Shown in pieces: positions 60 through 15,118 of a stretch of 64,000 nt of DNA. Where the stretch lies: positions 62,001 through 126,000 of the IMG/VR virus record IMGVR_UViG_3300045051_000720. One strand, 5' to 3'. How positions within the stretch are numbered: position 1 is the first letter of the stretch; each line of letters begins with the position of its first letter. Position numbers and translations under genes: made by a program. The notes under the pieces were generated by a model. That model ran no database searches and was not told the DNA's origin. It saw nothing but the letters and a program-made list of their open reading frames with translations.

Positions 60-626
60 TTAGATCGCACCAAACGCATGGTCGGTCGAGTACCAACGCG
101 CGCCATAGGCGAGGAAGTTGAATGTCATGCCGCCCGTGAGGGTCGACGCGACAGACACACCTACCGAAGACGCCGCCGTCGCGCCTGCGTTAACAATCAG
201 GTCAGCCGCGTTGGCACAGCGGATGGTCGCCGTACCAGTCGTGGCCGTCTTGATCGTAACCGTCTTGCCCTGCATGTTGGCGGTCGGAGGAAGCGTGTAG
301 ATGACCGGCGCGAACCCGGACAGCAGCACGAAGTTTTCCGCGATGCCAGTGAAGTTGCTCGTCAGCGGGCCGACGCCGCTGAAGGAGGGCAGCGCGGCAA
401 TCCAGCGGCCCGTTGTGGGCGTAGAGAGGACGTTGATGTTATCTACCGTCGCAGTCGACGATGCCGAGAAGTAGTAAAGGTTGGCGCCACCGTCGTTGGG
501 GGTGTTCGTTCCAAGGGTGCGAACCACAGCGTTCTCACCAAGGGTTGCAACACTGATGGCGGCTAGGGCGGCATTGGTGGCAACCGCGCCATTGGGGAGA
601 GCAGAGATGGGGACGATAGTAGCCAT
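60..626 (-). CDS. Putative virion structural / tail-fibre-like protein
   Basis: Ala/Thr/Gly-rich beta-type sequence with GGxxxYxF...GRW and YTLP...GKTVTIK motifs typical of fibre or baseplate modules; GGTGTATA motif upstream. Confidence 0.5.
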   Translation of the reverse strand: MATIVPISALPNGAVATNAALAAISVATLGENAVVRTLGTNTPNDGGANLYYFSASSTATVDNINVLSTPTTGRWIAALPSFSGVGPLTSNFTGIAENFVLLSGFAPVIYTLPPTANMQGKTVTIKTATTGTATIRCANAADLIVNAGATAASSVGVSVASTLTGGMTFNFLAYGARWYSTDHAFGAI

Positions 627-681
627 GGAAGTAAGAGGGGTTGTCCATCGCTATACACCCGCGCTCGCGCGGTTTATGCCG

Positions 682-987
682 CTAGGGATAGAGTTCTATC
701 CCGTAGGGTAGCTCGACTACGTAGGATGCATGGAACCGCTCCTTGCCATCCGCCGCGAAATAGATGCACTCCTGATTGTTGTGGAAGGTCTCAAACCCCT
801 TCTGGCTACCCCGACTCCACCACGTGTTGCTATTAGCCTTTAGCCACGCCTCGAAGGCGTTTGCTGCCGCCTTGTAGTCGGGAGTTAAAAGCAAGGTATC
901 GCCGTCCCCACCCTCGGCTAGGCAGGCCTGTTCGAGGGCGAGGAAGATGGTGGGGAGGGTGGTTGACATGGGGTTGAATTGAGCCAT
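682..987 (-). CDS. Hypothetical protein
   Basis: 101-aa ORF co-oriented with neighbours. Confidence 0.55.
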   Translation of the reverse strand: MAQFNPMSTTLPTIFLALEQACLAEGGDGDTLLLTPDYKAAANAFEAWLKANSNTWWSRGSQKGFETFHNNQECIYFAADGKERFHASYVVELPYGIELYP

Positions 988-1847
988 TTGTCTCTGATGG
1001 CGAGAACGGTTTCTGTTGTAAAAGCCACCCCACCTACATTGGTTGGGTTGTATTGCCTAAGATAGGCTATAAATTTATCGTATTTCCTTGACATTCTGAT
1101 AGTTGCATCAGAGTAAAGATAGTCTAAAAACACTATGGACCCTCGGGTTGACAGTTTTATATCTTTAGCTCGGCTATGGGAGTAACCATGCAAACGGGGT
1201 TTGACCCCTAATCGTTGTTCAATAAATGTTTGAACTCCTTCACAAAAATATGGAGAACCCGTAATTGAAACCCCTATTTTTCTATCTTTGGTATTAAAAT
1301 ATACGCTTCCATCTCCGTCGAATACTCCTCTTAAAAAATGAGACATCAAATCTCTAGGTACCTGCTGTTCGCTTGGAAACTGGAGAATGAGTGACTTGGC
1401 CGGTACGCATCCTAATTTACTAAGAGCATCGCTAATTTTTCGGCTGTAAATAGCCAGTACATACTTTTGCTTATGGAAAGGTTTACGTTTTGCCGGTTGA
1501 TGTAAATTTTGTGGAGAACCCATGGCACGCGCCATTTCAATAAGTAGGTATTGGTCGGGTTCGCACAACTGAAGTGTCAATCCCTCACGATTATTACATC
1601 CGTCCGAATACATCAGCCCTAAAAAATAAGCCTTTTCCGGATCGTCAATACGATCAAAATACGTTTCATTACACGATCTAAACCTAGAAGTGCGACTAAC
1701 ATATGAATCATATTTCTTGAGGATATTTCTTATCTGATCTTCGGTCACGCCATAGTCTTTCGCTATGTCAGACGGCTTCCTATGTCCGTTGACATGAGCA
1801 TCTATGATTCTTGGATGCTGCGATGGAAGTATTTTGACGTTTGGCAA
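918..1847 (-). CDS. LAGLIDADG homing endonuclease with N-terminal HTH
   Basis: YFLGLMYSDGC and FLRGVFDGDGS motifs; AT-rich. Confidence 0.9.
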   Translation of the reverse strand: MPNVKILPSQHPRIIDAHVNGHRKPSDIAKDYGVTEDQIRNILKKYDSYVSRTSRFRSCNETYFDRIDDPEKAYFLGLMYSDGCNNREGLTLQLCEPDQYLLIEMARAMGSPQNLHQPAKRKPFHKQKYVLAIYSRKISDALSKLGCVPAKSLILQFPSEQQVPRDLMSHFLRGVFDGDGSVYFNTKDRKIGVSITGSPYFCEGVQTFIEQRLGVKPRLHGYSHSRAKDIKLSTRGSIVFLDYLYSDATIRMSRKYDKFIAYLRQYNPTNVGGVAFTTETVLAIRDKWLNSTPCQPPSPPSSSPSNRPA

Positions 1848-1848
1848 G

Positions 1849-2946
1849 TTACAAATCTTTTAGCAAAATGTCTACGGCTTGTGCATAGGTGTGGTTTTGC
1901 AGTTCCAAACCTGCCTTGTTTAATCCCGTTTTCGCCCGTCGTTCAGCCTCCTCAAAACCCGCTATGATGTCGTCATCACCCGCTACGAATAAGTTGCCTA
2001 CGTTAAATTGGCCCTGCGCGGCAAAATGTACCCCATCAGCAGCGGGTCGCTTCCCATTAGGATTGACTAACACGGCAGTGTCGTCCGCCAGATAGTCCAA
2101 ATAGGCATGGGCACGCATAGCCACAGGCCATGCCCCCATGGCAGTAGCGTGGTAGCACGGAAGGTCCCGGCCTTCGCCTCCCGACATTGCAATCACAATC
2201 TCGCTAGACTGAAGAGTCTGATTGTAGATGGCATTCGTGGAAGCCCACGGAAGGAAGTTGATATTGTTGTACCGCTTTCCTTCAAGAGCCTGCCCTATAA
2301 ACTGCTCTAACGCGCCGGGCGGAAGAAACCCATTATGTACCGCACAGTTGAGACGATAGTCCTTGTTATTACCATACCGCTTAGCCCAAAGACGCAGAAC
2401 CTGAGGATGACCTTTACGAGCCTCCCACTTTCCGGCCATCAAGAACGAAATCGCGCCTTCTATCGCAGGTCGCTTAGGTAATAGACTAAAATTGTGAGCA
2501 TCAAATCCCAGCGGCAGGTATTCACTTTGGACCCCAAACATACCAAACACGGTTTGGGTATACCGACTCGTCACATAGACCCTGTTCTGCTGACGGAGCA
2601 CATTGATTTCGCAAGGCGTTAGACTGTCCAGCTCGAAGAACGTCAGGAGATTGTTGCCTCGCTCAGAGTAGGAATGGATGCTATCATTGATGTGCCACAA
2701 TCGGATTGTGGCATGTTTGCGCGAATGGCGTTGCTGCGCGCTGTTGTGACAAGCACAAAGCCACTGCGTAAATCCCGGGTCATCTTTCTGAGTAGATAGA
2801 TCAAACGGATTGCGTGGGTCTGGAGTGATAGGAAACAGAGCGGGATTTAACCCACGCTTGTACATTTCACGCAGCAGGGCAATAGAGACATTGCCAAAAC
2901 TCAGGGCGTTGATAGCAAACGAGGTTGCGAAGGGGGGAGTAGACAT
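1849..2946 (-). CDS. Glycosyltransferase (GT-B / GT4-like)
   Basis: GKWEARKG and SGGEGRDLP...AMG motifs. Confidence 0.75.
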   Translation of the reverse strand: MSTPPFATSFAINALSFGNVSIALLREMYKRGLNPALFPITPDPRNPFDLSTQKDDPGFTQWLCACHNSAQQRHSRKHATIRLWHINDSIHSYSERGNNLLTFFELDSLTPCEINVLRQQNRVYVTSRYTQTVFGMFGVQSEYLPLGFDAHNFSLLPKRPAIEGAISFLMAGKWEARKGHPQVLRLWAKRYGNNKDYRLNCAVHNGFLPPGALEQFIGQALEGKRYNNINFLPWASTNAIYNQTLQSSEIVIAMSGGEGRDLPCYHATAMGAWPVAMRAHAYLDYLADDTAVLVNPNGKRPAADGVHFAAQGQFNVGNLFVAGDDDIIAGFEEAERRAKTGLNKAGLELQNHTYAQAVDILLKDL

Positions 2947-2950
2947 AGGA

Positions 2951-3622
2951 TTACGTGATACCAAGGTGCGCCTTCACCAGCGCGAGGTTGTCGAAATAGA
3001 TCTGACGCGCGTGCTCGTGACTCACGTGCAACCGCTTTCCCACCTCACGCCAGCTCATGGTCTCATGGTCGGGTGAGAAATGCCTCCACTTGAGGATCAG
3101 ATCAAACCGCTTGTCCGTGCACACCTCGGCCGCGGCGCGGCGCACCTCATCGATCCCAATGTCGCGGTTGGTGGTTTGCACCACGTCGGTCTGCTCATCC
3201 TCAAGGGTGACAAACCCCCCGTTGGTGACCTGATAGGTATCGTCATCCACATCCAGCGGCGCCATGCCGGTGCCCGCATAAGGCCCAGCCGAGATCGGGT
3301 CGCGCGCGCCCTTCTTGAGCAGTCCACGACACATGTAGTCGGTGCGGTCGCCAATGTAGGTCGAGAGTTTGGTCCCGCGGCCCGGCTCGTACGCACAGAT
3401 GAACCGGTACAGATTGAACAGCTTCTCGTCATCCAGATCGCGCGCGTGGATGGTGTTGGGGTACGCGCTGGCATAGCGATTGACGACGGTGAAATAGATG
3501 CCCGAGTGCCGCTGGACCAGCTCAACCAAGGCCGTGCTGTCCTGCTCGGTTTTGACACGCGTGATGAGGTCGGATTCGGAGAGGCCGGTGTCGAGAGGTA
3601 AGGTGGGGTCGCGGCGACTCAT
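2951..3622 (-). CDS. Phage-encoded sigma-70-family factor
   Basis: Region 2-like ALVELVQRH...YEPGRGTKLSTY and region 4 HTH MSWREVGKRLHVSHEHARQI. Confidence 0.8.
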   Translation of the reverse strand: MSRRDPTLPLDTGLSESDLITRVKTEQDSTALVELVQRHSGIYFTVVNRYASAYPNTIHARDLDDEKLFNLYRFICAYEPGRGTKLSTYIGDRTDYMCRGLLKKGARDPISAGPYAGTGMAPLDVDDDTYQVTNGGFVTLEDEQTDVVQTTNRDIGIDEVRRAAAEVCTDKRFDLILKWRHFSPDHETMSWREVGKRLHVSHEHARQIYFDNLALVKAHLGIT

Positions 3623-4407
3623 CGGGTCTGTTCGTAGTCGAGAGGGTTGAAGGGGGTATCAGGACCGTCGATGAAGGTGCAGGTCTTGACGGGTACGTCA
3701 CCACATACATCGCGCGTCTGACCCGGGTCCCACCGGAGGCGATACATCAGTTCGCCCCACGTACTCGAACAGTCGTCACCGTTACGAAATCCATGTATGA
3801 TGGTACCAGTCTGTCCGTTGAAGTGCGTTGTGCGTACTCGGCGACCATACAGTGGGGCACAAGTGAATCCGCGCCCCCACTCACCCATACCGCTAGTGTA
3901 ATGCATCGTCCATCCATCTGGAATGGGACCTACCCATGGTGGGGGAGGTGGATTGAGACAGACTCTCATACTCTCGGGTATCTTGACCCCATCTCCTACC
4001 GCCACCTCCGCGCCTTTCAAGGGCACCAGCCCGCTTGCGCCTAGCGGCGCGCCAGATGTGGCTAGAACCGTCGATCCGCCGCCAGTTGAGGTCAGGGTAC
4101 CCCCCATGACGATCGGGGGCGTATTGGCCCGTTCTAGGGCCTTTAACGCCTCATCCAGCACCAGCATCAAGATCGGTGCGGCACACAGTGCTTCTAGGTC
4201 TATCAACACCCAGCCCGTTACCAACCATTTGAGGAGGGTGAGTCCCACTCCCACCCACCAGCCAAAGCAGACCGGACACCCCAATGGGTACACGATCCAC
4301 TCGGGGGACACCTTCCGTAGCCACGCCCGAGGCCGCGCGCAGATGCGTGATTGCCCAAGTACCCAGAAGGCGAAATATACAACCAGCGCATAGACAACGA
4401 GTTCCAT
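3619..4407 (-). CDS. Membrane protein (CPVCFGWW motif)
   Basis: N-terminal hydrophobic segments with CxxC; overlaps neighbouring stop/start. Confidence 0.6.
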   Translation of the reverse strand: MELVVYALVVYFAFWVLGQSRICARPRAWLRKVSPEWIVYPLGCPVCFGWWVGVGLTLLKWLVTGWVLIDLEALCAAPILMLVLDEALKALERANTPPIVMGGTLTSTGGGSTVLATSGAPLGASGLVPLKGAEVAVGDGVKIPESMRVCLNPPPPPWVGPIPDGWTMHYTSGMGEWGRGFTCAPLYGRRVRTTHFNGQTGTIIHGFRNGDDCSSTWGELMYRLRWDPGQTRDVCGDVPVKTCTFIDGPDTPFNPLDYEQTR

Positions 4408-5708: not shown

Positions 5709-7100
5709 ATGGCCTTCGGCAATCACTCTCGCCCGCGCGGCACCCGTGTCAACGGGGCTTATGTTCCCAACCCCGGTATCGCGCGGTTGTGGGAGGATTT
5801 CAAGGCATATGCCTCACCCCTCGGGTTTACACCCGATCAATGGCGATTCACCGAGGCGTTCTTCACCGGTCGCAACGTGTGTTTGTTGGGTCGAGCGGGT
5901 ACAGGCAAATCGTATGTGCTCAAGGCGCTGTTCGAGTACCTGACCAAACAGAAAGTGTCGGTGGGACGCACGGCCACGACTGGCGTTTCGGCGTTTGGGA
6001 TAGGTGGTCAAACGATCCATTCGTGGGCGGGGTTGGGTCTTGCGGACGAACATTCCGAGGCTATCATCGCGTCCATCCAGAAGAAGGGCAAGGTCAAGGC
6101 GCGGATTCGCGCGGCGCAGGTGTTGTTCATTGACGAGGTCTCGATGGCCAAGGCCGATCTGATGGACAAGCTGGATGCGGTGTTGCGCTATTACCGTGAC
6201 TCGGGCGATCCTTGGGGCGGCGTGCAAGTCGTTCTCTGCGGGGACTTTTTGCAACTTGCACCAGTCTTCAAGGGTGACGAGACCCAAGCCTTCGCTTTCC
6301 ACTCGGCGGTCTGGGATGAGGGTAACGTGCGTACCATCGTGCTCCAAAAGGTCGTTCGCCAGCAGGGCGATAATACGCTTTTGTCCATTCTCAACGACGT
6401 GCGCGTTGGCAATACCGATTCGCTCCATCTGCTGGACAGCCGGGTGGGCGCGACATGGCCCGACAACGAAATCGAGGCGGTGAGAATCTTCTGCAAGAAC
6501 ATTGATGTCGACGGGTACAACCGCGAACGCATGGCACAGCTCACCAGCGCCGCGAAGACCTACACTGCGCGCGATTCGGGCGAGTCTTTTCACACGGACA
6601 CGTTCAACAAGAACTGCCCCGCGCCGCAGGTGTTGGAGCTGAAGGTGGGGGCGCAGGTGCTCCTTGTTGCCAATCTGGATGTCCAGAGCGGCTTTGTGAA
6701 CGGTAGCGTAGGCATCGTCAAGGCTTTTGGTCCGAACGGGGTGACGGTCAAGTTCACCCAAGGTACGACCGTCGTCGAGCATAACGAGTGGACCATCAAG
6801 GAGCAGGCGGTCGGGATGGATGGCAAGATCATCTATCGCACGGTCGCCACGCGCCGACAGATCCCGCTCAAGGTGTGCTATGCGGTGACTACTCACCGGG
6901 TCCAAGGCATGACGCTGGACCGTGCGATTATTGACATGACGGAGGCCTTCACGACCGGGCAGGTGTACACCAGCCTGAGCCGTGTGCGTGATTTGGAATC
7001 ACTCTCGCTTGCCAGCGCCATTCCCCACTCGGCGATTCGAGTCAATCCCGAGTGCGTGGCGTTCTACGAGGAAGCGGAGCGGGCGGAGAACCCGTTTTAA
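5709..7100 (+). CDS. PIF1-family SF1B DNA helicase
   Basis: GRAGTGKS, IDEVSM, GDFLQLAPV, LKVGAQV, QGMTLD and GQVYTSLSR motifs; start moved to the ATG downstream of the promoter. Confidence 0.93.
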   Translation: MAFGNHSRPRGTRVNGAYVPNPGIARLWEDFKAYASPLGFTPDQWRFTEAFFTGRNVCLLGRAGTGKSYVLKALFEYLTKQKVSVGRTATTGVSAFGIGGQTIHSWAGLGLADEHSEAIIASIQKKGKVKARIRAAQVLFIDEVSMAKADLMDKLDAVLRYYRDSGDPWGGVQVVLCGDFLQLAPVFKGDETQAFAFHSAVWDEGNVRTIVLQKVVRQQGDNTLLSILNDVRVGNTDSLHLLDSRVGATWPDNEIEAVRIFCKNIDVDGYNRERMAQLTSAAKTYTARDSGESFHTDTFNKNCPAPQVLELKVGAQVLLVANLDVQSGFVNGSVGIVKAFGPNGVTVKFTQGTTVVEHNEWTIKEQAVGMDGKIIYRTVATRRQIPLKVCYAVTTHRVQGMTLDRAIIDMTEAFTTGQVYTSLSRVRDLESLSLASAIPHSAIRVNPECVAFYEEAERAENPF

Positions 7101-7829
7101 CGCAGCAGCTCGAAACGCCCCTCCTCCAGCACTATCTCAGGCCGGTGACACTTGGCTCCAGTGCGATGGTCGGTGATGCGACGGTCGATCAGGTTGTAGG
7201 TTCTCACCTTCTCACCCCGCCCGGCTCCGCCGTAGGCCGCGCGGGTTTGCTGTCCCTTAACCCACTGCGCCAGTTTGCCTGCGAGACACTCGCGGGCGAC
7301 GCGGCGGTTTTGCCACTGGTCGCGCCCGTTGATGAAGACCTCAAGGCCGGTTGGGGTGTGGCGTAGACGGACGGCAGAGCAAACCTTGTTCGCGTTTTGC
7401 CCGCCTGCACCCTGTGAGCCGCGCTGGAAGGACTCCGCCAGATCACACTCGCGCATGGTGGTAGACCCTTGAGGCTTGAGCAAGGTCACGGTGACGGCCA
7501 CATAGCTAGTGTGACGCCTGCCACCGCGCTCAGTGTGAGGCACGCGTTGGACGCAGTGACCACCCGTCTCGGCGTCAAACAAATCGATGGCGCGCCGGTC
7601 ATGGATAGTAAAGGACCATTTGGATGGACCCTCCTCGCCCAGTTCGGGCGTTAGCCGATTGCGCGCGGCGTAGGCTAGGTAGGCCGACCAGAGCTGGCCA
7701 GCGAACGCTTTGCTGTCTTCCCCACCCTCGCCGGACTGAACCTCAACGAGAACCCCAACCGCGTCAAAGCGACTCCAGCCGTGCGACGTAGCCGTTAGAC
7801 TGCGGGACCGTGGTGCGGGTTGGGTTCAT
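7097..7829 (-). CDS. Class I peptide chain release factor lacking domain I, predicted +1 programmed frameshift (join 7829-7767, 7765-7097; ~243 aa)
   Basis: GAGGQNANK catalytic motif, QRVPHTE (RF1-type PxT), VEVQSGEGGEDS and RTYN; the 21-codon first ORF ends GGAG-TCG-CTT-TGA-C. Confidence 0.85.
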
Positions 7830-7880: not shown

Positions 7881-8528
7881 TTATCCCAGAAACGGCTTCC
7901 ACACGGGGTGCTTTGGGTCCTCGCGTAGATGCACGATCGGCGGCACACTCGCCGGAGCCTTCGGGCGCGGGCGCGGTAGACCCGCTTCTTCGGGGGTCTT
8001 GTCGGCCTTCATGGTGTTGATCCGCTTGTCGCAGGTGACGGTATTCTCCCATGTATCGCGACCACCTCGCGAGCGCGGATCGATGTGGTCAACCGACAGT
8101 TCGGCGCGGGTCAGTTTGCGCTTGGTGTAGGCGCAGATGAAGTTGTCGCGGCGGTGCACGTTACCCGTGGACCAGCGCGTGGTGCGCATGGGGATCTTGT
8201 CGAAGTGAGCACAGATGACCACCAGTGGCGCGCGGATGCGGCCCTCGGGATTGTCCGCACTGCGTCCGACGCCAATCCACAGGTCGCCTTCACGCACGGG
8301 CAGCTTAACCCAGTTTTCCCATGCGGTCGGTTGGGCACTGACCAGTACGTGATCGCCATTCTCGTCAACGGCGGTCGTGATGTCGAGCGCGTAGCCCGGG
8401 TGGTCTCCGTCAGACTGGGAGTTGAGAAACACCACCGCGTCTCTCACACTCATCTGATCTACGGGGGACCACGAGCGGTTGAGCTTGAGGACGATGGTCT
8501 TGTCGAGGATGCTGAGGTGATCGGACAT
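7881..8528 (-). CDS. HNH endonuclease (McrA-like)
   Basis: RDNFICAY, SVDHIDPRSRGG..TWENTV.C...N..KADKTPEEAG. Confidence 0.88.
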   Translation of the reverse strand: MSDHLSILDKTIVLKLNRSWSPVDQMSVRDAVVFLNSQSDGDHPGYALDITTAVDENGDHVLVSAQPTAWENWVKLPVREGDLWIGVGRSADNPEGRIRAPLVVICAHFDKIPMRTTRWSTGNVHRRDNFICAYTKRKLTRAELSVDHIDPRSRGGRDTWENTVTCDKRINTMKADKTPEEAGLPRPRPKAPASVPPIVHLREDPKHPVWKPFLG

Positions 8529-8577
8529 GGTGAGTGAGGGGCTAGAGTTAGGGTCTTTGTGTGATCTGATGGGAAAA

Positions 8578-8665
8578 TGGCGGAAGCGAGAGGGCACGAT
8601 CCCCAACGCACGAGTCGTCCTGCGGTGTAGCACACCGTGGCAGTCGCCTGACTGCTTTCGCTTCC
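8578..8665 (-). tRNA. tRNA-Ser(GCT)
   Basis: Cloverleaf, long variable arm, G73-CCA. Confidence 0.8.
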
Positions 8666-8666
8666 G

Positions 8667-8755
8667 TGGCGGTAACAAGTGGGGTTCAACCACTGTGCAA
8701 TGAAGCACACTCTGGGTTTCGGGTCCAGTCGAGGAAAACGTCCTCAGTTGCTACC
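8667..8755 (-). tRNA. tRNA-Ser(CGA)
   Basis: Cloverleaf, long variable arm, GCCA end. Confidence 0.75.
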
Positions 8756-8842
8756 GGCGGAGTGGTGCCGTACTGCCCGGCTGCCGGTTGCCCGACACAA
8801 CGCTTTCCAAGCGCCGTCCACCTCTAGGTGGCCCAACCCTCC
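8756..8842 (-). tRNA. tRNA-Ser(GGA)
   Basis: GGCGC-TTGGAAA-GCGTT anticodon arm, long variable arm, bulged acceptor stem. Confidence 0.72.
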
Positions 8843-8875
8843 AAAAAGATACAGACCCGAGCGGGGTCTGTAAAG

Positions 8876-8969
8876 TGGCGGTGAGTTGAGATCTTGCGTC
8901 CCAAGGCGGGGTTGGCCCTCCTCCATTCGCTTTCAAGGCGGCGGCAGCGCCTCGGCTGCTTAACTCACC
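8876..8969 (-). tRNA. tRNA-Ser(TGA)
   Basis: CTTGAAA loop, long variable arm, GCCA end. Confidence 0.8.
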
Positions 8970-8973
8970 AAAG

Positions 8974-9049
8974 TGGTGCGGACACCCCGAGTTGCACGGG
9001 GACTATCCCTCGTTAGGACCGAGGTTGACTGTCTGTTGCCGATGTCCGC
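8974..9049 (-). tRNA. tRNA-Arg(CCT)
   Basis: CCTCG-GTCCTAA-CGAGG arm, ACCA end. Confidence 0.82.
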
Positions 9050-9537
9050 GAAAAATACTTGTCGCGCTCGACGGTGCGGCGACCCAGCTCTGCGCTGAGG
9101 AAGGCTGTCATCTTGCCGTTGTGACTCATGAGCTTGTCGGCCCACCCCACCATCAGCTGGTTGGGGCACACAAACGGTCCGCGCGCGTTGACGATCAGTT
9201 GGTAGGCATCAGAGTAAGGTATCCTGTGGTGGACCAGCCAGATGAAGGCTGCTGCGCTTGACCGCGATACGCCTGCGAAGCAGTGAAAGAGGATGGACTG
9301 GTCGGGGCTGGTTTGGGCGTAGACACCCAGTAGCCGCCGTATCATCGCCTCTGTGGGAGCGAGAGGGTTGGACGAGTTGCCCGTATCAGCGAACACAAAT
9401 GAGTGGAGAGTGAAGGGGTACTTGAACGCTCGGATGTCGGGGCCGGGTTGGTGGACCTCGTGGAAAGAGATGATGTGGTCCAGCAGAACCGTCGCGAAGG
9501 CAGGAACCTCGGAGACGCCACAAATAGCGAAGGGCAT
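9013..9537 (-). CDS. Cys-dependent (dual-specificity / tyrosine) phosphatase
   Basis: HCFAGVSRS P-loop, FAD acid loop and PN motif; own promoter at 9543-9571. Confidence 0.9.
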   Translation of the reverse strand: MPFAICGVSEVPAFATVLLDHIISFHEVHQPGPDIRAFKYPFTLHSFVFADTGNSSNPLAPTEAMIRRLLGVYAQTSPDQSILFHCFAGVSRSSAAAFIWLVHHRIPYSDAYQLIVNARGPFVCPNQLMVGWADKLMSHNGKMTAFLSAELGRRTVERDKYFSRTSATDSQPRS

Positions 9538-9572
9538 AGCCGATGCTAGTCCGTAATGAGGGCGCTGTCAAG

Positions 9573-9665
9573 TGGCGCGAACGGCAGGATTCTCACCCAC
9601 ATCAGGGCCGAGCGGCCCTTCACCTGCGTTCGAAGCGCAGTTGACGCTATTATGTCGGCGTTCGC
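9573..9665 (-). tRNA. tRNA-Arg(TCG), long variable arm
   Basis: CTGCG-CTTCGAA-CGCAG arm, GCCA end. Confidence 0.8.
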
Positions 9666-9666
9666 A

Positions 9667-9755
9667 TGGTCTCGACGGCGAGAGTTGCACTCGCAGATTG
9701 GCTTGCGCCAGACGGTTTAGAGGACCGTTGCCTTGTCTACCCGAGCCCCGTCGAG
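9667..9755 (-). tRNA. tRNA-Arg(TCT), long variable arm
   Basis: ACGGT-CCTCTAA-ACCGT arm, ACCA end. Confidence 0.75.
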
Positions 9756-9760
9756 GGAAA

Positions 9761-9837
9761 TGGCGCGAGACCGGGGATTCAAACCCCGACTGATCCTCGT
9801 TCGCAACGAGGGCGACTATTCGGTTGCCGAGTCTCGC
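9761..9837 (-). tRNA. tRNA-Arg(GCG)
   Basis: CCTCG-TTGCGAA-CGAGG arm, GCCA end. Confidence 0.82.
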
Positions 9838-9932
9838 AAAGAGATTGCACCGTCCCCAGTCGATGCGTCGCTGGGGAGCAGGACACCAGTAGGACATCGC
9901 ATTAGTCCACCCGGAGATTCCACGGTGCAAAT

Positions 9933-10007
9933 TGGGGCGCACGACCGGATCTACCCCGGCCCTCCAAGCGTCACAGGCTCGGGTGCTTCTACTACACTAC
10001 GTGCGCC
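9933..10007 (-). tRNA. tRNA-His(GTG)
   Basis: G-1:C73 pair, CTGTGAC loop. Confidence 0.85.
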
Positions 10008-10013
10008 ATAAGG

Positions 10014-10089
10014 TGGAGCTTCAGTAGGGGTTCTCACCCTCCTCTCTCGGATACAAGCCGAGGCCATCGAATGTCTATGGGTCTGAAGC
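10014..10089 (-). tRNA. tRNA-Thr(TGT)
   Basis: CTCGG-CTTGTAT-CCGAG arm, CCA end. Confidence 0.82.
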
Positions 10090-10093
10090 GAAA

Positions 10094-10167
10094 TGGAGCC
10101 GAGGACCGGTAACGCTCCGGTGTCTATCGTTTACGAAACGATGGCTCTGCTTTTGAGCTACCAAGGC
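10094..10167 (-). tRNA. tRNA-Thr(CGT)
   Basis: ATCGT-TTCGTAA-ACGAT arm, CCA end. Confidence 0.85.
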
Positions 10168-10171
10168 AAAG

Positions 10172-10247
10172 TGGTGGTCCCGGGAGAGCAACGATCCTCC
10201 ACGTCACGCCTATAAAGCGCGCAGTCTGCCGATTAACTTACAGGACC
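10172..10247 (-). tRNA. tRNA-Ile(TAT)
   Basis: CGCGC-TTTATAG-GCGTG arm, ACCA end. Confidence 0.78.
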
Positions 10248-10361
10248 AAAAGGAGGGCATCGGAATCATCTCGGCGCGCAGTGTGCACCTTACGATCCGT
10301 CAGCCCTATAGGTGGTTTGTTTACGAGACGGTGCGTTTAACGACACAGGGCGCAAACGAAA

Positions 10362-10481
10362 TGGTTCCACGGCTCAGGTCGATCAACCCCACCTTTGGCC
10401 AGCCACCTCAGCGAGGTTTGGTAGCTCGTTAGGCCCTTCGCTTCTGACGCCTCCAGTTGGATTGCCCTCAGTGACCGTGAA
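10362..10481 (-). ncRNA. Oversized tRNA-like RNA (120 nt)
   Basis: TTCACGG/CCGTGGA acceptor-like stem plus ACCA; internal arms non-canonical. Confidence 0.45.
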
Positions 10482-10484
10482 AGA

Positions 10485-10570
10485 TGGTGGGCGTGGAGGG
10501 ATGCGAGCCCTCAAGGACAACGGAATTTGAACCCGTCGCTTCTACCAGTTTCGCTTTCGTCCACACGCCC
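10485..10570 (-). tRNA. tRNA-Leu(CAA), atypical architecture
   Basis: ACGGG-TTCAAAT-TCCGT arm; extra GGACG/TGTCC pairing. Confidence 0.8.
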
Positions 10571-10572
10571 GA

Positions 10573-10655
10573 TCGGCATGGTGGGATTCGGACCCACAGG
10601 GGATAGCGCATTTTAAGTGCGCCGGTTGTCGCCAGTTTCCCTTATCCACATGCCG
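10573..10655 (-). tRNA. tRNA-Leu(TAA), atypical architecture
   Basis: GCGCA-CTTAAAA-TGCGC arm; extra GGATA/TATCC pairing; CCA not encoded. Confidence 0.8.
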
Positions 10656-10661
10656 GTAAGA

Positions 10662-10736
10662 TGGTGGGACCATGGAGCCAACGCACTCCAATCTCCGCGC
10701 TGAGAACGCGGCGAACTACTCTTATTCGATGATCCC
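10662..10736 (-). tRNA. tRNA-Glu(CTC)
   Basis: CCGCG-TTCTCAG-CGCGG arm, ACCA end. Confidence 0.82.
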
Positions 10737-10737
10737 G

Positions 10738-10820
10738 TAGGCGTGGAGAGATTCGGACTCTCAAGGACACGTGATCCTAAGTCACGCGGTTCTGCCAATT
10801 TCCCTTCCGTCCACACGCCC
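10738..10820 (-). tRNA. tRNA-Leu(TAG), atypical architecture
   Basis: CGTGA-CTTAGGA-TCACG arm; extra GGACG/TGTCC pairing. Confidence 0.8.
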
Positions 10821-10826
10821 ATAAAA

Positions 10827-10917
10827 TGGTGGCCTCGGGGGGAGTCGGACCCCCACGCTACTATGATTTCGCTCGCGAATCTCATTCGCGCATGTCTACC
10901 AGTTCCATCACGAGGCC
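10827..10917 (-). tRNA. tRNA-Leu(GAG)
   Basis: Class II cloverleaf, ATGAGAT loop, ACCA end. Confidence 0.85.
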
Positions 10918-10994
10918 GAGGTCCCAGTCGGAGTTGCACCGACCCTGTTCGTCATTACCAATGACGCGCCGTGGCTACACTCGGCATTGGGACC
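10918..10994 (-). tRNA. tRNA-Thr(GGT)
   Basis: CGTCA-TTGGTAA-TGACG arm. Confidence 0.82.
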
Positions 10995-10999
10995 ATAAA

Positions 11000-11076
11000 T
11001 GGGGGCTCAGGTCAGATTTGCACTGACGACCGTCTCCGTATGGGGGAGCCGCGCTAGCTAGCTGCGCCACTGAGCC
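11000..11076 (-). tRNA. tRNA-Met(CAT) elongator (Ile2 not excluded)
   Basis: CTCC-CCCATAC-GGAG arm, CCA end. Confidence 0.72.
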
Positions 11077-11077
11077 G

Positions 11078-11153
11078 TGGTGGTCCCGTCGAGATTCGCA
11101 CTCGCCTCATCCGATTAAGAGTCGGAGTCCTCGCCTATCTAGGAGTCGAGACC
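11078..11153 (-). tRNA. tRNA-Lys(CTT)
   Basis: TCCGA-CTCTTAA-TCGGA arm, ACCA end. Confidence 0.87.
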
Positions 11154-11161
11154 GTAAAGTA

Positions 11162-11452
11162 TTCAACCGCGTAGCCGCGTTTCTGTTGCCGGGCCATCCC
11201 GACCGACATCCATTTCTCTCACCCACGGTCACCCGTGAACGGGTATCGTTTATAGACACCTGCACCAACCACGCCCTGCTTGACGGCCAGAACTAGCCTC
11301 GGGCTCCATTTGGCTTGCTGGTATCGTGTGGTTATCGCGAGTGTCTACCGACGTAACATCGTCGGGACTGCTCTCCCATCGACTTCTGTCCAGACGCGAA
11401 CTTGACCTCTACGCACGCATCGAGTGCGCGGCAGCGGATGTCTGCGGTTGAA
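11162..11452 (-). ncRNA. rnpB: RNase P RNA (compact, ~290 nt)
   Basis: P1 TTCAACCGC/GCGGTTGAA; P2 GACATCC/GGATGTC; CR-I GAGGTCAAGTTCGCGT pairing with CR-V AACAGAAACGCGGCTA (P4); CAGCAAGCCAAAT; GAGAGAAATG. Confidence 0.85.
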
Positions 11453-11455
11453 AGA

Positions 11456-11530
11456 TGGTGGAGGTACCGAGTGCCGCCCTCGGGCTTGAGTCATGCCATG
11501 ACCCTGTGCTGCTGTTATCACTATACCCCC
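11456..11530 (-). tRNA. tRNA-Ala(GGC)
   Basis: G3:U70 pair, ATGGCAT loop, ACCA end. Confidence 0.87.
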
Positions 11531-11604
11531 GCTGCCTCGGAGCGAATTGCACGCCCACCTAACACCTTCAGAGGGTGTCGGACTAGCTGTTATCCCACGA
11601 GGCA
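11531..11604 (-). tRNA. tRNA-Gln(CTG)
   Basis: U1-A72, ACACC-CTCTGAA-GGTGT arm. Confidence 0.85.
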
Positions 11605-11638
11605 AAAGTGATAGGGGTGACAAAACTGACCCGTCATT

Positions 11639-11709
11639 GGGTCAGTAGTGTAGTGGTAGCACGTCCGCCTGACTGGCGGGGGGCGCGGGTTCAAATCCCG
11701 TCTGATCCA
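11639..11709 (+). tRNA. tRNA-Val(GAC), inverted relative to the array
   Basis: Canonical GTGT-AGTGGTA-GCAC D arm and GGTTCAAATCC T loop on the + strand. Confidence 0.72.
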
Positions 11710-11715
11710 TTTAAT

Positions 11716-11791
11716 TGGCTGCCCACCACGGATGACAGCCGTGACCCTCGCCTTCAAAGGGCGGTATGCTTGACGTTTACATCAATGGGCA
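11716..11791 (-). tRNA. tRNA-Gln(TTG)
   Basis: CTTTGAA loop, GCCA end. Confidence 0.82.
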
Positions 11792-11798
11792 ATGAGAG

Positions 11799-11876
11799 TG
11801 GTCGGCGTGGAGGGATTCGCACCCCCGATCCTTCGCTTCCGGAGCGAGCATGTTGGCTAGGCTACACCACACGCCG
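11799..11876 (-). tRNA. tRNA-Pro(CGG)
   Basis: C1-G72, TCCGGAA loop, ACCA end. Confidence 0.85.
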
Positions 11877-11977
11877 ATATTGCGGGCCGGTTATCCATCC
11901 GGCGGCACCCGGCTTGATGGTGAGCAAGACGGAGACTCTGGAATTGGCGTGATTTTATGGCTCACGCCGCCGCAAAA

Positions 11978-12055
11978 TGGTCCTCGCGGCAGGCTTCGCT
12001 CCTGCGGCCTTCTGCATGTCGTGCAGCCGCTCTAACTGGGCTGAGCTACGCGAGG
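11978..12055 (-). tRNA. tRNA-Val(GAC)
   Basis: CTGC-ACGACAT-GCAG arm, ACCA end. Confidence 0.82.
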
Positions 12056-12060
12056 GAAAG

Positions 12061-12138
12061 TGGTCGGGCCAGTTGGATTCGCACCAACGATCTCATGCTC
12101 CCCGAGCATGCGCGATGACTAGGCTACGCTATGACCCG
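12061..12138 (-). tRNA. tRNA-Pro(GGG)
   Basis: CATGC-TCGGGGA-GCATG arm, ACCA end. Confidence 0.87.
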
Positions 12139-12237
12139 ATTGGCAGATACCGTCTGTTACTCCCACCGTGGTGTCCCGTCTGCCGCGGGGCTTTAGGTGG
12201 TGTTTGGGTAATCCAAACGTCTCGTGAACGGCTAAGA

Positions 12238-12336
12238 TGGCTGTACCGGTAGGAGCCGCCCCTACACCGCCGCAGGTCATGCGTACGGGCTCGCTTAACA
12301 GGCGAGTGCAACGAACGTGCTATTTGCCTCGGTACA
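12238..12336 (-). tRNA. tRNA-Asn(GTT), long variable arm
   Basis: CTCGC-CTGTTAA-GCGAG arm, GCCA end, 99 nt. Confidence 0.78.
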
Positions 12337-12342
12337 ATAAAA

Positions 12343-12418
12343 TGGTCGTCGCTGAGGGACTCGCACCCCCGAACCTCTGCGTGTAGGGCAGGTACCGTAG
12401 CTGCTGGGTCAAGCGACG
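12343..12418 (-). tRNA. tRNA-Val(TAC)
   Basis: CCTACAC loop, ACCA end. Confidence 0.82.
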
Positions 12419-12422
12419 AAAG

Positions 12423-12499
12423 TGGCGCGATAGATGGGTGCTGCCCCCACTTGTCTCGGCATAGACAGTGCCGCGAGCATGCTGTTGCTCTTCTACCGC
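12423..12499 (-). tRNA. tRNA-Asp(GTC)
   Basis: CGGCA-CTGTCTA-TGCCG arm, GCCA end. Confidence 0.85.
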
Positions 12500-12501
12500 G
12501 T

Positions 12502-12573
12502 ACGGATGGAGGGACTCGCACCCCCGTTATGTCCGGTCCCAAACCGGAAGCCATTGCTGCTAGGCGACATCCG
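12502..12573 (-). tRNA. tRNA-Pro(TGG)
   Basis: TCCGG-TTTGGGA-CCGGA arm. Confidence 0.8.
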
Positions 12574-12580
12574 TGTGAAA

Positions 12581-12653
12581 TGGATGCAGGGCCGAGGAAT
12601 CGCACCCGGTCAGGGCGACGGGTATGAACCGCGCTTGGTCTAACCTCCCTGCG
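12581..12653 (-). tRNA. Initiator-like tRNA-fMet(CAT) with reduced D arm
   Basis: C1:A72 mismatch, TTCATAC loop, CCA end. Confidence 0.7.
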
Positions 12654-12660
12654 TAAAGTG

Positions 12661-12810
12661 TTCCCTTTGTAGGCGTGCTCCAACGCCTCGTTGTTTGTCA
12701 AAATGGCCGGTGCTCTACCGTTGAGCTAGCATCCTCCTTGCGAAGGACCGCAGGTGTCGAACCTGTATCTCCGGCAAGTGTTACCTTGCGGGCTTTTGAC
12801 CTCTAGGGAA
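12661..12810 (-). ncRNA. YrlA-like Y RNA (circularly permuted tRNA-mimic domain on a long stem)
   Basis: T arm (CAGGTTCGACACCTG), then closed acceptor stem, then D arm (GCTCAACGGTAGAGC), enclosed by GCCGG/CCGGC, GTCAAAA/TTTTGAC and TTCCCT/AGGGAA stems. Confidence 0.72.
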
Positions 12811-12812
12811 AG

Positions 12813-12885
12813 TGGTGGAGCCCCGGGCATCGCAGCCCAACGACAGCCGGATTTTCAGTCCAGCCCGTGCACTCGCACTGACTCC
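12813..12885 (-). tRNA. tRNA-Phe(GAA)
   Basis: CTGGA-CTGAAAA-TCCGG arm, ACCA end; short D arm. Confidence 0.72.
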
Positions 12886-12943
12886 GGAGCCATCGTTAGG
12901 TCCGCCGATGGCGCAGGCGGTCTCGGGTTATTGACGAGGAAGA

Positions 12944-13020
12944 TGGGACGGACGGTGGGTAGCGCGCCCACATGAAGCCGGATTTGGAGTTCGGTGCCTT
13001 ACTTGTCGAGCCACGTCCGT
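12944..13020 (-). tRNA. tRNA-Trp(CCA)
   Basis: CTCCAAA loop, CCA end. Confidence 0.8.
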
Positions 13021-13195
13021 ATGAAAAGGTGGAGCGAAGAGATGGTCATTTATTCACCGGGCTGGGACCAATCCACGAGGTGCCCGATCCAGATGTCTCC
13101 TGCCTCGCTCCGTTTGGAGACCAACGAGTGATGTGGTGTCAGGTTCCTGTAGGCTTCACTGACACCGACCCGCGGCGTGAACCGCGAGGTGAAGA

Positions 13196-13269
13196 TGGTG
13201 GTCAAGTCGGGTGCTGCCCCCGCGTCTAACGGTTATCGACCGTTGGCTCTACTGTTGAGCTACATGACC
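13196..13269 (-). tRNA. tRNA-Ile(GAT)
   Basis: AACGG-TCGATAA-CCGTT arm, ACCA end. Confidence 0.87.
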
Positions 13270-13399
13270 AAAATTGCTGTCGCGGTCAACCCGCGTTTCG
13301 GCTCAGCTTGGCCGTTTGCAAAATGGCGACTACGTTAACCAGTCTTGACCGGAGGCGTGCTTGCGGGCGCGTCGTAGCCCGTTGGGTATTAGCCCAAAG

Positions 13400-13491
13400 T
13401 GGTGGACCCGGAGGGAGTTGCACCCCCGACGCCCCGTTAGGGGTCCAGATTTACAGTCTGGTGCAGCCATCTGACAGCTACCTCGTGGTCC
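13400..13491 (-). tRNA. tRNA-Tyr(GTA)
   Basis: CCAGA-CTGTAAA-TCTGG arm, long variable arm, ACCA end. Confidence 0.85.
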
Positions 13492-13497
13492 GAAAAA

Positions 13498-13572
13498 TGG
13501 AGCGTCGTGCGGGACTCCCACCCGCGTGTGTCTGCTTGGAAGGCAGATGCCTTGGTTCTCGGCCAACGACGC
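13498..13572 (-). tRNA. tRNA-Gly(TCC)
   Basis: TCTGC-CTTCCAA-GCAGA arm, TCCA end. Confidence 0.87.
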
Positions 13573-13632
13573 ATGGGGTTTATCGCCACCGCGGAGCGGC
13601 TGATTGGTTACAGCGGGGTGGAAGCCCCAAGA

Positions 13633-13707
13633 TGGTGGAGTCAACGAGATCCGCCCTCGTATGTCACGGATGCAAACCGTGTGCCTTTCTATGTCGGCCA
13701 TGACCCC
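13633..13707 (-). tRNA. tRNA-Ala(TGC)
   Basis: G3:U70, CACGG-TTTGCAT-CCGTG arm. Confidence 0.87.
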
Positions 13708-13709
13708 AT

Positions 13710-13781
13710 TGGACCCGGCGAGTGCCGCCCTCGCGCCTCCGCGTTGCGAACGCAGCGTGCTACTGTTGTCACCACGAGCCC
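13710..13781 (-). tRNA. tRNA-Ala(CGC)
   Basis: G3:U70, CTGCG-TTCGCAA-CGCGG arm. Confidence 0.85.
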
Positions 13782-13786
13782 GAAAA

Positions 13787-13967
13787 GAGTGACACGATAG
13801 ACTTGTCCGGCAGTCTGGGGAGTCTTGCGGGACTCCTATGGCCTAAACCACGTCTTACGCCGCCTCTTGCCTTAACGCGCGGCCCTTTCCCTTGCGGGTA
13901 CTCAGGGGCTCATCGGCTGTGGATAGAGGACGGACTGTTGGTCCGGGTAGTATCTATCGTGTTGCCC
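13787..13967 (-). ncRNA. 6S-RNA-like rod (~180 nt)
   Basis: Closing stem ACACGATAGAT/GTCTATCGTGT, internal stems, central bubble with 3-prime hairpin GGAGTC-CCGCAA-GACTCC. Confidence 0.45.
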
Positions 13968-14053
13968 CGGTTAGGATCGACTCCGCCGAGGCGAAAAAGG
14001 ATGCCGGACCCCAGCTTTCGCTTGCGGGCGTCCCCTCGCGGGTCCGACGTAAG

Positions 14054-14129
14054 TGGAGGCGCGCCACGGTGCTGCCCCGTGCAAACAGTGTTTTGCAAAC
14101 ACGTCTCGTCGCTGGCTGAGTCGCGCGCC
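14054..14129 (-). tRNA. tRNA-Cys(GCA)
   Basis: TTGCAAA loop, U73-CCA. Confidence 0.85.
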
Positions 14130-14176
14130 ATTGAGCTAACCACGCCAAGGGGGACCAACAGGTGTCGCTCAGGAAA

Positions 14177-14252
14177 TGGTGGGTCCATCGGGCATCGATC
14201 CCGCTTCCACGGTTTAAAAGACCGCTGCTAATCCGGCTACAGCTCTGGACCC
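14177..14252 (-). tRNA. tRNA-Lys(TTT)
   Basis: GCGGT-CTTTTAA-ACCGT arm, ACCA end. Confidence 0.85.
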
Positions 14253-14254
14253 AT

Positions 14255-14326
14255 TGCGGGTAGGGAGACTTGCGCTCCCCTCTCAGCCTTGGCAAAGCCG
14301 TGCGTCGCTATCTACGCTTCACCCGC
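14255..14326 (-). tRNA. tRNA-Gly(GCC)
   Basis: CGGCT-TTGCCAA-GGCTG arm. Confidence 0.82.
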
Positions 14327-14515: not shown

Positions 14516-15118
14516 CTACGAAGCCGTCCGACCAGTCGCCGGAGTGAGAAATGACGGAACACAAGGACGGTCAGGACGATTATACCGACTCCTTGGACAG
14601 AGAGCACCTAAAGGTAGAGCCGGTGGGGTAATCTTAGGCGCGTTCTCCCTCTTCCGTTTGTGTTCTATTTGACCATGAAAGCGATCAAATCCTAGCATTC
14701 TAGCGGCTGTGATAGCAACGTGATGGTCTTGTGTCTGTCCGAGACGAAAGGAGAGATCGTTGCGATCTTCTAGTCCGAAATCTTTGACGAGCTTATCTTT
14801 TTGGGAGCTGGTCAGATACTGGAAGATAGCCCTTCGATGAATACTTCGAGGCTCTTTCACCGTTGGCTTGTTTCGGGTAGCCCTTTCTGCGCGGTGATGT
14901 GCCTCGTGACAATCCCGACACAGTACCTCCAGATCCTCCATTCGTTCGTTACCACCTACCCGTTCGTAGGTTTTGTGATGGACATCGGTGCCGTGTTCAT
15001 GACATCGATTACAAACGGGACCATAGTAAGCAATCGCCTCAGCCCGCTTGGCCTTCCAGATGGGTGACTGGAGGTATTGACGATGGAGCAATTGATTGTC
15101 GGTAAGATGCTGGGCCAC
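14516..15118 (-). CDS. HNH endonuclease
   Basis: YLQSPIWKAKR...CNRC...VHHKTY...DLEVLCRDCHEAHH. Confidence 0.88.
   Translation of the reverse strand: MAQHLTDNQLLHRQYLQSPIWKAKRAEAIAYYGPVCNRCHEHGTDVHHKTYERVGGNERMEDLEVLCRDCHEAHHRAERATRNKPTVKEPRSIHRRAIFQYLTSSQKDKLVKDFGLEDRNDLSFRLGQTQDHHVAITAARMLGFDRFHGQIEHKRKRENAPKITPPALPLGALCPRSRYNRPDRPCVPSFLTPATGRTAS

Follow-up and report, generated by a model that had tools for sequence, protein, structure and literature searches.

A 219-kb soil phage carries, inside its tRNA gene cluster, a shrunken homologue of bacterial type-A RNase P RNA, the RNA enzyme that trims tRNA precursors. It belongs to a conserved phage family which is not detected by the standard Rfam models in the members scanned and of which we found no report. 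The DNA examined (hereafter the window) is a stretch of 64,000 nucleotides, bases 62001-126000 of the 219,464-bp virus record IMGVR_UViG_3300045051_000720, which is about 96% complete, has 59% G+C and comes from a rhizosphere metagenome. All tRNA genes of this genome lie in one minus-strand array at window 8.5-14.3 kb, in which ARAGORN finds 14 genes and Rfam adds about a dozen more. The element occupies window 11452-11162 on the minus strand (291 nt) and fills a 302-nt gap in this array. A sequence-only reading of this region had proposed a compact RNase P RNA containing P1, P2, the P4 pseudoknot and several conserved-region motifs, with a short and divergent specificity domain and no RnpA gene in the window. 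This observation was confirmed, as every motif named is present, in the order of a bacterial type-A RNase P RNA.

We compared the element with E. coli rnpB, using Rfam's structure line. All features described below are on the minus strand. P1 is formed by UUCAACCGC (11452-11444) and GCGGUUGAA (11170-11162), and P2 by GACAUCC (11442-11436) and GGAUGUC (11211-11205). After a single G, the P3 hairpin (11434-11409) follows, leading into the GAGG motif (11409-11406). J3/4 (AGGUC) and the P4 5' strand, AAGUUCGCGU (11403-11394), together occupy 11408-11394 and correspond to CR-I, with a bulged U at 11400. The P5 5' strand CUGG (11393-11390) pairs with CCAG (11321-11318), and the P6 5' strand CAGAA (11388-11384), within J5/7, pairs with UUCUG (11292-11288), which comprises four loop nucleotides plus the first nucleotide of the P17 3' strand. 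The reduced specificity-domain segment is 68 nt long (11389-11322). It is followed by the P5 3' strand, J5/15 (CAA) and the P15 5' strand GCC (11321-11312), with the motif AGCAAGCCAAAU at 11319-11308. The interior of the P15 arm (11311-11271) contains the L15 5' strand AAAUGGA, P16 (GCCC/GGGC) and the P17 hairpin (GGCU and GGCC around the loop AGUUCU). The L15 3' strand GGUU, the P15 3' strand GGU and an invariant GC occupy 11270-11262.

Two hairpins (11260-11242 and 11241-11220) are located in the P18 position. J18/2, AGAGAAAUG (CR-IV), runs into the P2 3' strand (11219-11205 in all) and includes the motif GAGAAAUG at 11218-11211, whereas E. coli has AGAUGAAUG at the same place. A small P19-like hairpin in J2/4 (11203-11188) precedes ACAGAA (11186-11181) and the P4 3' strand ACGCGGCU (11180-11173), which together with the following A (11186-11172) correspond to CR-V; E. 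coli has ACAGAACCCGGCUUA. The ordered motif series occurs once in the window and in none of 100 dinucleotide-preserving shuffles. Unconstrained folding recovered the P1 closing helix, with an MFE of -118.6 kcal/mol (z = -2.4 against shuffles).

The element is tightly enclosed by two minus-strand tRNA genes. Upstream is an unannotated tRNA-Ala(GGC)-like gene (11530-11456) with G3:U70 and an encoded ACCA, which was read from the sequence and is missed by both ARAGORN and the Rfam tRNA model; its 3' end lies 3 nt before P1. Downstream, an 8-nt U-rich spacer (11161-11154) leads to tRNA-Lys(CUU) at 11153-11081 (Rfam tRNA, 33.3 bits). A search for RnpA (PF00825) in the whole 219-kb record found none. 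The array module also holds a release-factor-like protein, HNH endonucleases and a DSPc-like phosphatase, none of which resembles a known RNase P protein.

No Rfam RNase P model matched the element at the gathering threshold, at E<=10 on 621 nt or 306 nt around it, or in the whole phage genome, and six other family members also gave no hit, whereas E. coli rnpB scored 318.6 bits in the same search. The absence of a covariance-model match had been named beforehand as grounds for rejecting the RNase P reading, and for the curated models this condition is literally fulfilled. We regard it as a failure of sensitivity rather than a refutation, on the comparative evidence given below. Sequence similarity to bacterial RNase P RNA is confined to the core junctions, which explains the miss; the full model also charges for the missing specificity domain and treats the covarying P4 strands as conserved single-stranded sequence.

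To identify homologues, we first compared the element with 50,697 phage records by blastn, which returned nothing, and an exact three-motif pattern of the window copy likewise found nothing in IMG/VR. The proteins of this phage are only remotely similar to those of known phages. However, a PIF1-like helicase encoded 4 kb away has many relatives at 50-77% identity in a large protein database, several of them on contigs of about 100-200 kb. The contigs of 12 of these helicases (13 loci, two of them identical in the element) yielded homologues of the element on nine distinct contigs. A looser family signature pattern then gave 76 loci in IMG/VR, ten of which were true members and seven of these distinct, on contigs of 29-205 kb. 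In total, 17 distinct sequences of 221-328 nt were obtained, including the window copy, with about 45% to 61% G+C in the elements. The family is distributed among large soil and freshwater phages on contigs of 11-205 kb, and all 16 further homologues lie within tRNA arrays in the same orientation as the tRNAs. The homologue on contig L013 (contigs are designated here by L numbers) has the same tRNA-Lys(CUU)/tRNA-Gln(CUG) synteny as the window. On the other hand, three related contigs (L012, L260 and L261) show no copy in the stretches examined, within 10 kb of the helicase, and nhmmer found no copy at 240 loci with more distant helicases (identity <=48%) from IMG/VR, JGI metagenomes and GTDB genomes.

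Base pairs were placed in homologous columns by fixed offsets from invariant anchors, with segment lengths set by hand from the sequences. Across the 17 sequences, 33 columns in P2, P4, P5, P6, P15, P16 and P17 (551 cells) are 97.6% canonical, 27 columns carry double-sided (compensatory) changes and only 3 are invariant. Sliding the 3' partner by 1-2 positions reduces pairing to 34-38%, and pairing each 5' nucleotide with the 3' nucleotide of another sequence gives 65%. In P2, whose 3' strand starts at the G of the J18/2 AAUG, six of 7 columns are compensatory. The P4 pseudoknot has 8 columns that are 94-100% canonical, 5 of them compensatory (e.g., UCGCGU/ACGCGG, UCGCUC/GGGCGG, UCGAUA/UAUCGG and UCUAGA/UCUAGG). 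All 4 columns of P5 are compensatory and 100% canonical (CUGG/CCAG, UUGC/GCAA, GUAC/GUAC and CAGA/UCUG). All 5 columns of the type-A-specific P6 pseudoknot are compensatory and 94-100% canonical (CAGAA/UUCUG, CAGCA/UGCUG, AACAC/GUGUU, CCCUC/GAGGG and AAACC/GGUUU). P15 has 3 bp and is 100% paired, with pair types GU, CG, UA and GC (GCC/GGU, GUC/GAU, CCC/GGG, CGC/GCG, CUC/GAG and UCC/GGA), and P16 and P17 columns are also compensatory. Thus, both pseudoknots that define the type-A catalytic domain are supported.

An independent pair count for P15 and P17, based on a MAFFT alignment of the P15 arm, gave 94% pairing and a covariation score of 0.658, compared with 0.169 +/- 0.035 in shuffles, and none of 500 shuffles reached this score. 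RNAalifold also recovered P5 and a P7-like helix with compensatory pairs. Among single-stranded motifs, the L15 GGU is invariant and AGA[G/C]AAAUG of J18/2 occurs in all 17 members. P1 is present with differing sequences in 16 of 17 members. A P3 hairpin of variable length (3-10 bp) is found in the 10 first-found members in which it was folded, and the P19-like hairpin is optional, being present in 6 of these first 10. Both hairpins in the P18 position are absent in L262 and L017. The bulged U of P4 is present in 16 of 17 members, the exception being L010, which lacks it in its secondary structure, and L275 has an aberrant 5' half. Not every copy need be active.

We also built covariance models without the specificity domain. 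Ten bacterial type-A RNase P RNAs were retrieved, and nine of them plus E. coli rnpB were used for two bacterial-only models. For the 3' half (R1, J5/15 to the 3' end), the top seven hits in 281 kb of phage loci fall on the elements, on the right strand, over the full model length and with GCAA, GGGU, AGAnAAAUG and ACAGAA in register; the best is L262 (24.5 bits, E = 2.5e-4), whereas the window copy, although the best hit in its 7-kb array (11318-11155), is weak (11.6 bits, E = 0.028). The model of the 5' part (R2) returned only noise, and a linear profile of the phage family did not find E. coli rnpB. A reciprocal model built only from phage 3' halves (R3), which scores 96 bits at window 11321-11157, had the E. 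coli rnpB 3' half as its top hit in 33 kb of bacterial DNA (717-851), although weakly (E = 0.09), and six of its nine best hits were correct rnpB 3' halves.

The family keeps the complete catalytic domain, with P1-P2-P3, the P4 pseudoknot with its bulged U, P5, the P6 pseudoknot, P15-P16-P17 with the GGU loop, J18/2 and ACAGAA. The segment between the P5 strands is reduced to 42-120 nt in the family, compared with roughly 160 nt in E. coli, and the full specificity domain (P7-P14) that docks the T-loop/D-loop elbow of tRNA in bacteria is not present. What remains is a P7-like helix (GYCG/YGRU), an invariant GG/CC helix, the motifs GGGAG and CGUUA..ACC.CA.GGUA, and one or two variable hairpins, with no room for P8, P9, P13 or P14. 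Most elements used by bacterial RNase P to bind the tRNA elbow are thus lacking, and substrate binding may be weak or different.

On the substrate side, 155 of 167 tRNAs found by ARAGORN in the first ten phage arrays (93%) encode the 3'-CCA. This fits the invariant L15 GGU, which pairs with CCA in bacterial RNase P; in the phage RNAs this contact is inferred from sequence alone. The sequence-only reading further suggested that the RNA is a ribozyme dedicated to maturing elbow-divergent tRNAs. The variant elbow is real. Only 44 of the 167 tRNAs have UUC at T-loop positions 54-56, and UGC is the most common (55). In a wider set of 244 tRNAs, those with UUC have GG in the D-loop in 108 of 110 cases, whereas those with UGC lack GG in 65 of 67 cases and mostly have AG, which looks like a concerted switch of the 18-55 tertiary pair. 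However, five phages with essentially only canonical tRNAs (L262, L275, L289, L295 and L324) carry the same RNA, and the length of the specificity domain does not track elbow type. The variant elbow therefore does not explain the ribozyme. Overall, this interpretation was partly supported: a compact phage homologue of bacterial RNase P RNA is upheld, a dedication to divergent elbows is not supported as stated, and use of the host RnpA remains an inference.

We consider the type-A fold, its conservation, the phage family and its genomic context to be established by the analysis, and hold the fold and the homology with high confidence. Catalysis, binding of CCA, expression, the protein partner and the release pathway are inferred. 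The best-supported mechanism, which is inferred and which we consider likely, is that the RNA is an active ribozyme for pre-tRNA 5' processing. It would be transcribed as part of the polycistronic tRNA array and released by processing of the two tRNAs that abut it, with RNase P cleavage at the 5' end of tRNA-Lys setting its 3' end. In at least five members, including the window, P1 starts 0-3 nt after the CCA of an upstream tRNA, and a U-rich spacer of about 8 nt precedes the next tRNA in most members, so that normal end-processing of the tRNAs would excise the RNA. It would then cleave the 5' leaders of the CCA-bearing pre-tRNAs of the phage, probably together with the host's RnpA because the phage encodes none, and would give the phage extra or host-independent maturation capacity for its roughly 27-tRNA array. 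A search of sequencing runs found the phage in full only in the source rhizosphere DNA run and in no RNA library.

The main alternative, although unlikely, is that the RNA is a decoy or sponge, which keeps the RNase P fold in order to sequester the host's RnpA or pre-tRNAs and thereby shuts down or redirects host tRNA maturation. The phage has no RnpA, the specificity domain is heavily reduced, the regions that contact RnpA in bacterial holoenzymes (J18/2, J2/4 and P15) are the best conserved, and a viral RNase P-like RNA discussed as a possible decoy exists in camelpox virus (PMC3001073). However, a decoy does not need an invariant GGU matched to CCA-encoding phage tRNAs, the bulged U of P4 or the ACAGAA core motif, all of which are conserved, and placement inside the phage's own tRNA array suggests that the RNA serves those tRNAs. 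It is also unlikely that a former RNase P RNA is now only a folded spacer that organizes cleavage of the array transcript or stabilizes it. The tight embedding between tRNAs with P1 mimicking a closed stem, the variable peripheral helices and the core irregularities of L010 and L275 are in agreement with this view, but a spacer would not preserve two long-range pseudoknots, nor single-stranded core motifs identical or near-identical to those of bacterial RNase P across contigs of very different base composition.

A decaying, functionless remnant of a captured host rnpB is very improbable: although the Rfam models fail and the specificity domain is largely deleted, the double-sided changes in 27 of 33 helix columns over 17 divergent copies require selection on the fold, and the position in the arrays is conserved. 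A part of a two-piece (permuted) tmRNA, suggested by a partial alpha_tmRNA hit of 15 bits at 11402-11483, was rejected, since the hit is caused by the T-arm, acceptor and CCA of the adjacent tRNA-Ala-like gene, ARAGORN finds no tmRNA, there is no tag reading frame, and the remainder aligns to the RNase P architecture. A more speculative possibility, which is doubtful but not excluded, is that the RNA is one half of an orthogonal tRNA-maturation system. With its stripped-down specificity domain, it might recognize pre-tRNAs mainly through the acceptor stem, the leader and the CCA/GGU contact, and could process phage tRNAs that the host enzyme handles poorly, including the A18/G55 variant-elbow tRNAs of this subclade, perhaps without RnpA or with an unrecognized phage protein. 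This would keep phage translation running when host RNase P is limiting, inhibited or destroyed during infection.

RNase P RNA is one of the few universal ribozymes, and our literature searches, which covered an incomplete library and so cannot exclude an existing report, found no phage-encoded RNase P RNA. The huge-phage survey does not mention RNase P, and the 2024 RNase P review mentions phages only as sources of substrates. A search of phage records with E. coli rnpB gave only hits that look like mislabeled bacterial or MAG-like records; for example, the hit in "Microcystis phage MaAM05" lies among fabI, engB and mtgA, and these were rejected as evidence for canonical rnpB in phages. A conserved phage family would add tRNA 5' maturation to the translation-related functions carried by large phages (tRNAs, tmRNA, release factors and aminoacyl-tRNA synthetases). 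It also offers a natural series of bacterial-type RNase P RNAs down to about 221 nt with a minimal specificity domain, with partner tRNAs in both canonical and variant-elbow forms, which makes the old question of how much of this domain is needed for tRNA recognition directly testable with natural sequences. In addition, it exposes a blind spot of the curated covariance models, and similar genes are probably being overlooked in viral metagenomes.

Other large RNAs, such as tmRNA, GOLLD and ROOL RNAs, are also located in or beside phage or prophage tRNA clusters (PMC6582537), and a tmRNA lies 1.6 kb from the L279 copy, but these have different folds, and no Rfam family of any kind matches the element. 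The camelpox virus RNA is likewise a virus-borne relative of the host-type RNase P RNA and raises the same question of enzyme versus decoy, but it is a eukaryote-type RNA of a eukaryotic virus, whereas the phage family shows strong covariation and a matched CCA/GGU system. The type T RNase P RNA of Thermoproteaceae (RF02357) and engineered C-domain-only "mini/micro" P RNAs work with a drastically reduced or absent specificity domain, showing that such a design can be catalytic. Type T is archaeal in its core features and gave no match in the Rfam scan, and the phage RNAs keep a small remnant of the specificity domain and the bacterial type-A hallmarks P6 and L15 GGU. Compared with bacterial type-A RNase P RNA (RF00010; e.g., E. 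coli M1 RNA, 377 nt), the phage RNAs have the same order and topology of P1, P2, P3, P4 with its bulged U, P5, P6, P15, P16, P17 and J18/2, and the same or nearly the same core motifs (GAGG..AAGU, CAA after P5, AAAU in L15, GGU before the P15 3' strand, GC after P15, AGAnnAAUG and ACAGAA...GGCU.A). They differ in their length (221-328 nt instead of about 330-420 nt), in the specificity domain of 42-120 nt, in a P15 of 3 rather than 4 bp, in a J3/4 and a P4 3' end that are one nucleotide shorter in most members, in two hairpins or none in place of P18, and in being encoded by a phage inside a tRNA array.

Analysis of the tRNA array (window 8578-14326) revealed an unannotated tRNA-Ala(GGC)-like gene on the minus strand at window 11456-11530, which has a G3:U70 acceptor pair, an encoded ACCA and an odd T-loop (GGCGGCA). 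This gene was missed by both ARAGORN and the Rfam tRNA model, and it produced the weak alpha_tmRNA hit. The tRNA-Lys(CUU) gene (window 11081-11153, minus strand) was found by Rfam at 33 bits but was missed by ARAGORN, and several other tRNAs of the array were seen by only one of the two tools. The best-scoring tRNA of the array (60 bits; window 11638-11710), a Val-GAC with a canonical GGUUCAAAUCC T-loop, is called on the plus strand, inside an otherwise minus-strand array of mostly variant tRNAs. Its reverse complement would read as Asp-GUC.

Comparison of the tRNA arrays of the window and 16 related loci (phage contig loci designated by L numbers) showed a concerted variant of the tRNA elbow. 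tRNAs with a UGC T-loop (G55) lack the D-loop GG in 65 of 67 cases and usually have AG, whereas tRNAs with UUC have GG in 108 of 110 cases. The variant dominates in the window and in L010, L014, L016, L018, L259 and L323, but is absent in L262, L275, L289, L295 and L324.

Two members of the RNase P-like RNA family were found to be irregular. The first is the L010/L011 copy (11905-12190, minus strand): L010 has the closest helicase (77%) but a very divergent RNA, and its P4 5' strand is 1 nt short, giving 7 contiguous pairs with no bulged U. The L275 copy (570-930, minus strand) has a 5' part that does not form P2 or P1, and it reads CCAGAA instead of ACAGAA.

Additional protein-coding genes were observed in and around the array. 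A short release-factor-like protein (RF-1 plus the end of the PCRF domain) is conserved at the edge of the tRNA array in this phage group, and is encoded at window 7097-7582 (minus strand) as well as at L010 5791-6183, L012 13116-13766, L014 3335-3985 and L259 5954-6595. An ORF with a weak dual-specificity-phosphatase (DSPc) match is conserved inside the tRNA array (window 9013-9537, minus strand; L010 9012-9542, L012 14249-14767, L014 5252-5785 and L259 7835-8509). LAGLIDADG and HNH homing-endonuclease-like genes (window 918-1847, 7881-8708 and 14516-15118, all on the minus strand) flank and interrupt the array, as they do in the relatives. Farther along, on the plus strand (window 17142-47000), there is a long run of sugar-modification genes (glycosyltransferases and two DegT/DnrJ aminotransferases), followed by ribonucleotide reductase and a RecA/UvsX-like gene.

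We also examined an rnpB-like stretch in the record named Microcystis phage MaAM05 (locus L339; MW495066.1 112323-118518). This stretch lies among fabI, engB and mtgA, and this part of the record looks like bacterial chromosome.

A TROVE (Ro60-like) protein gene lies next to the tRNA array in L262 (13224-14534, minus strand), and weak, sub-threshold YrlA (Y RNA-like) hits occur in the L289 array (2682-3654), suggesting that a Ro/Y-RNA module might be present in some relatives. In L279, a 108-kb viral contig, a strong tmRNA (161.7 bits; 3020-3403, plus strand) is located 1.6 kb downstream of the RNase P-like RNA.
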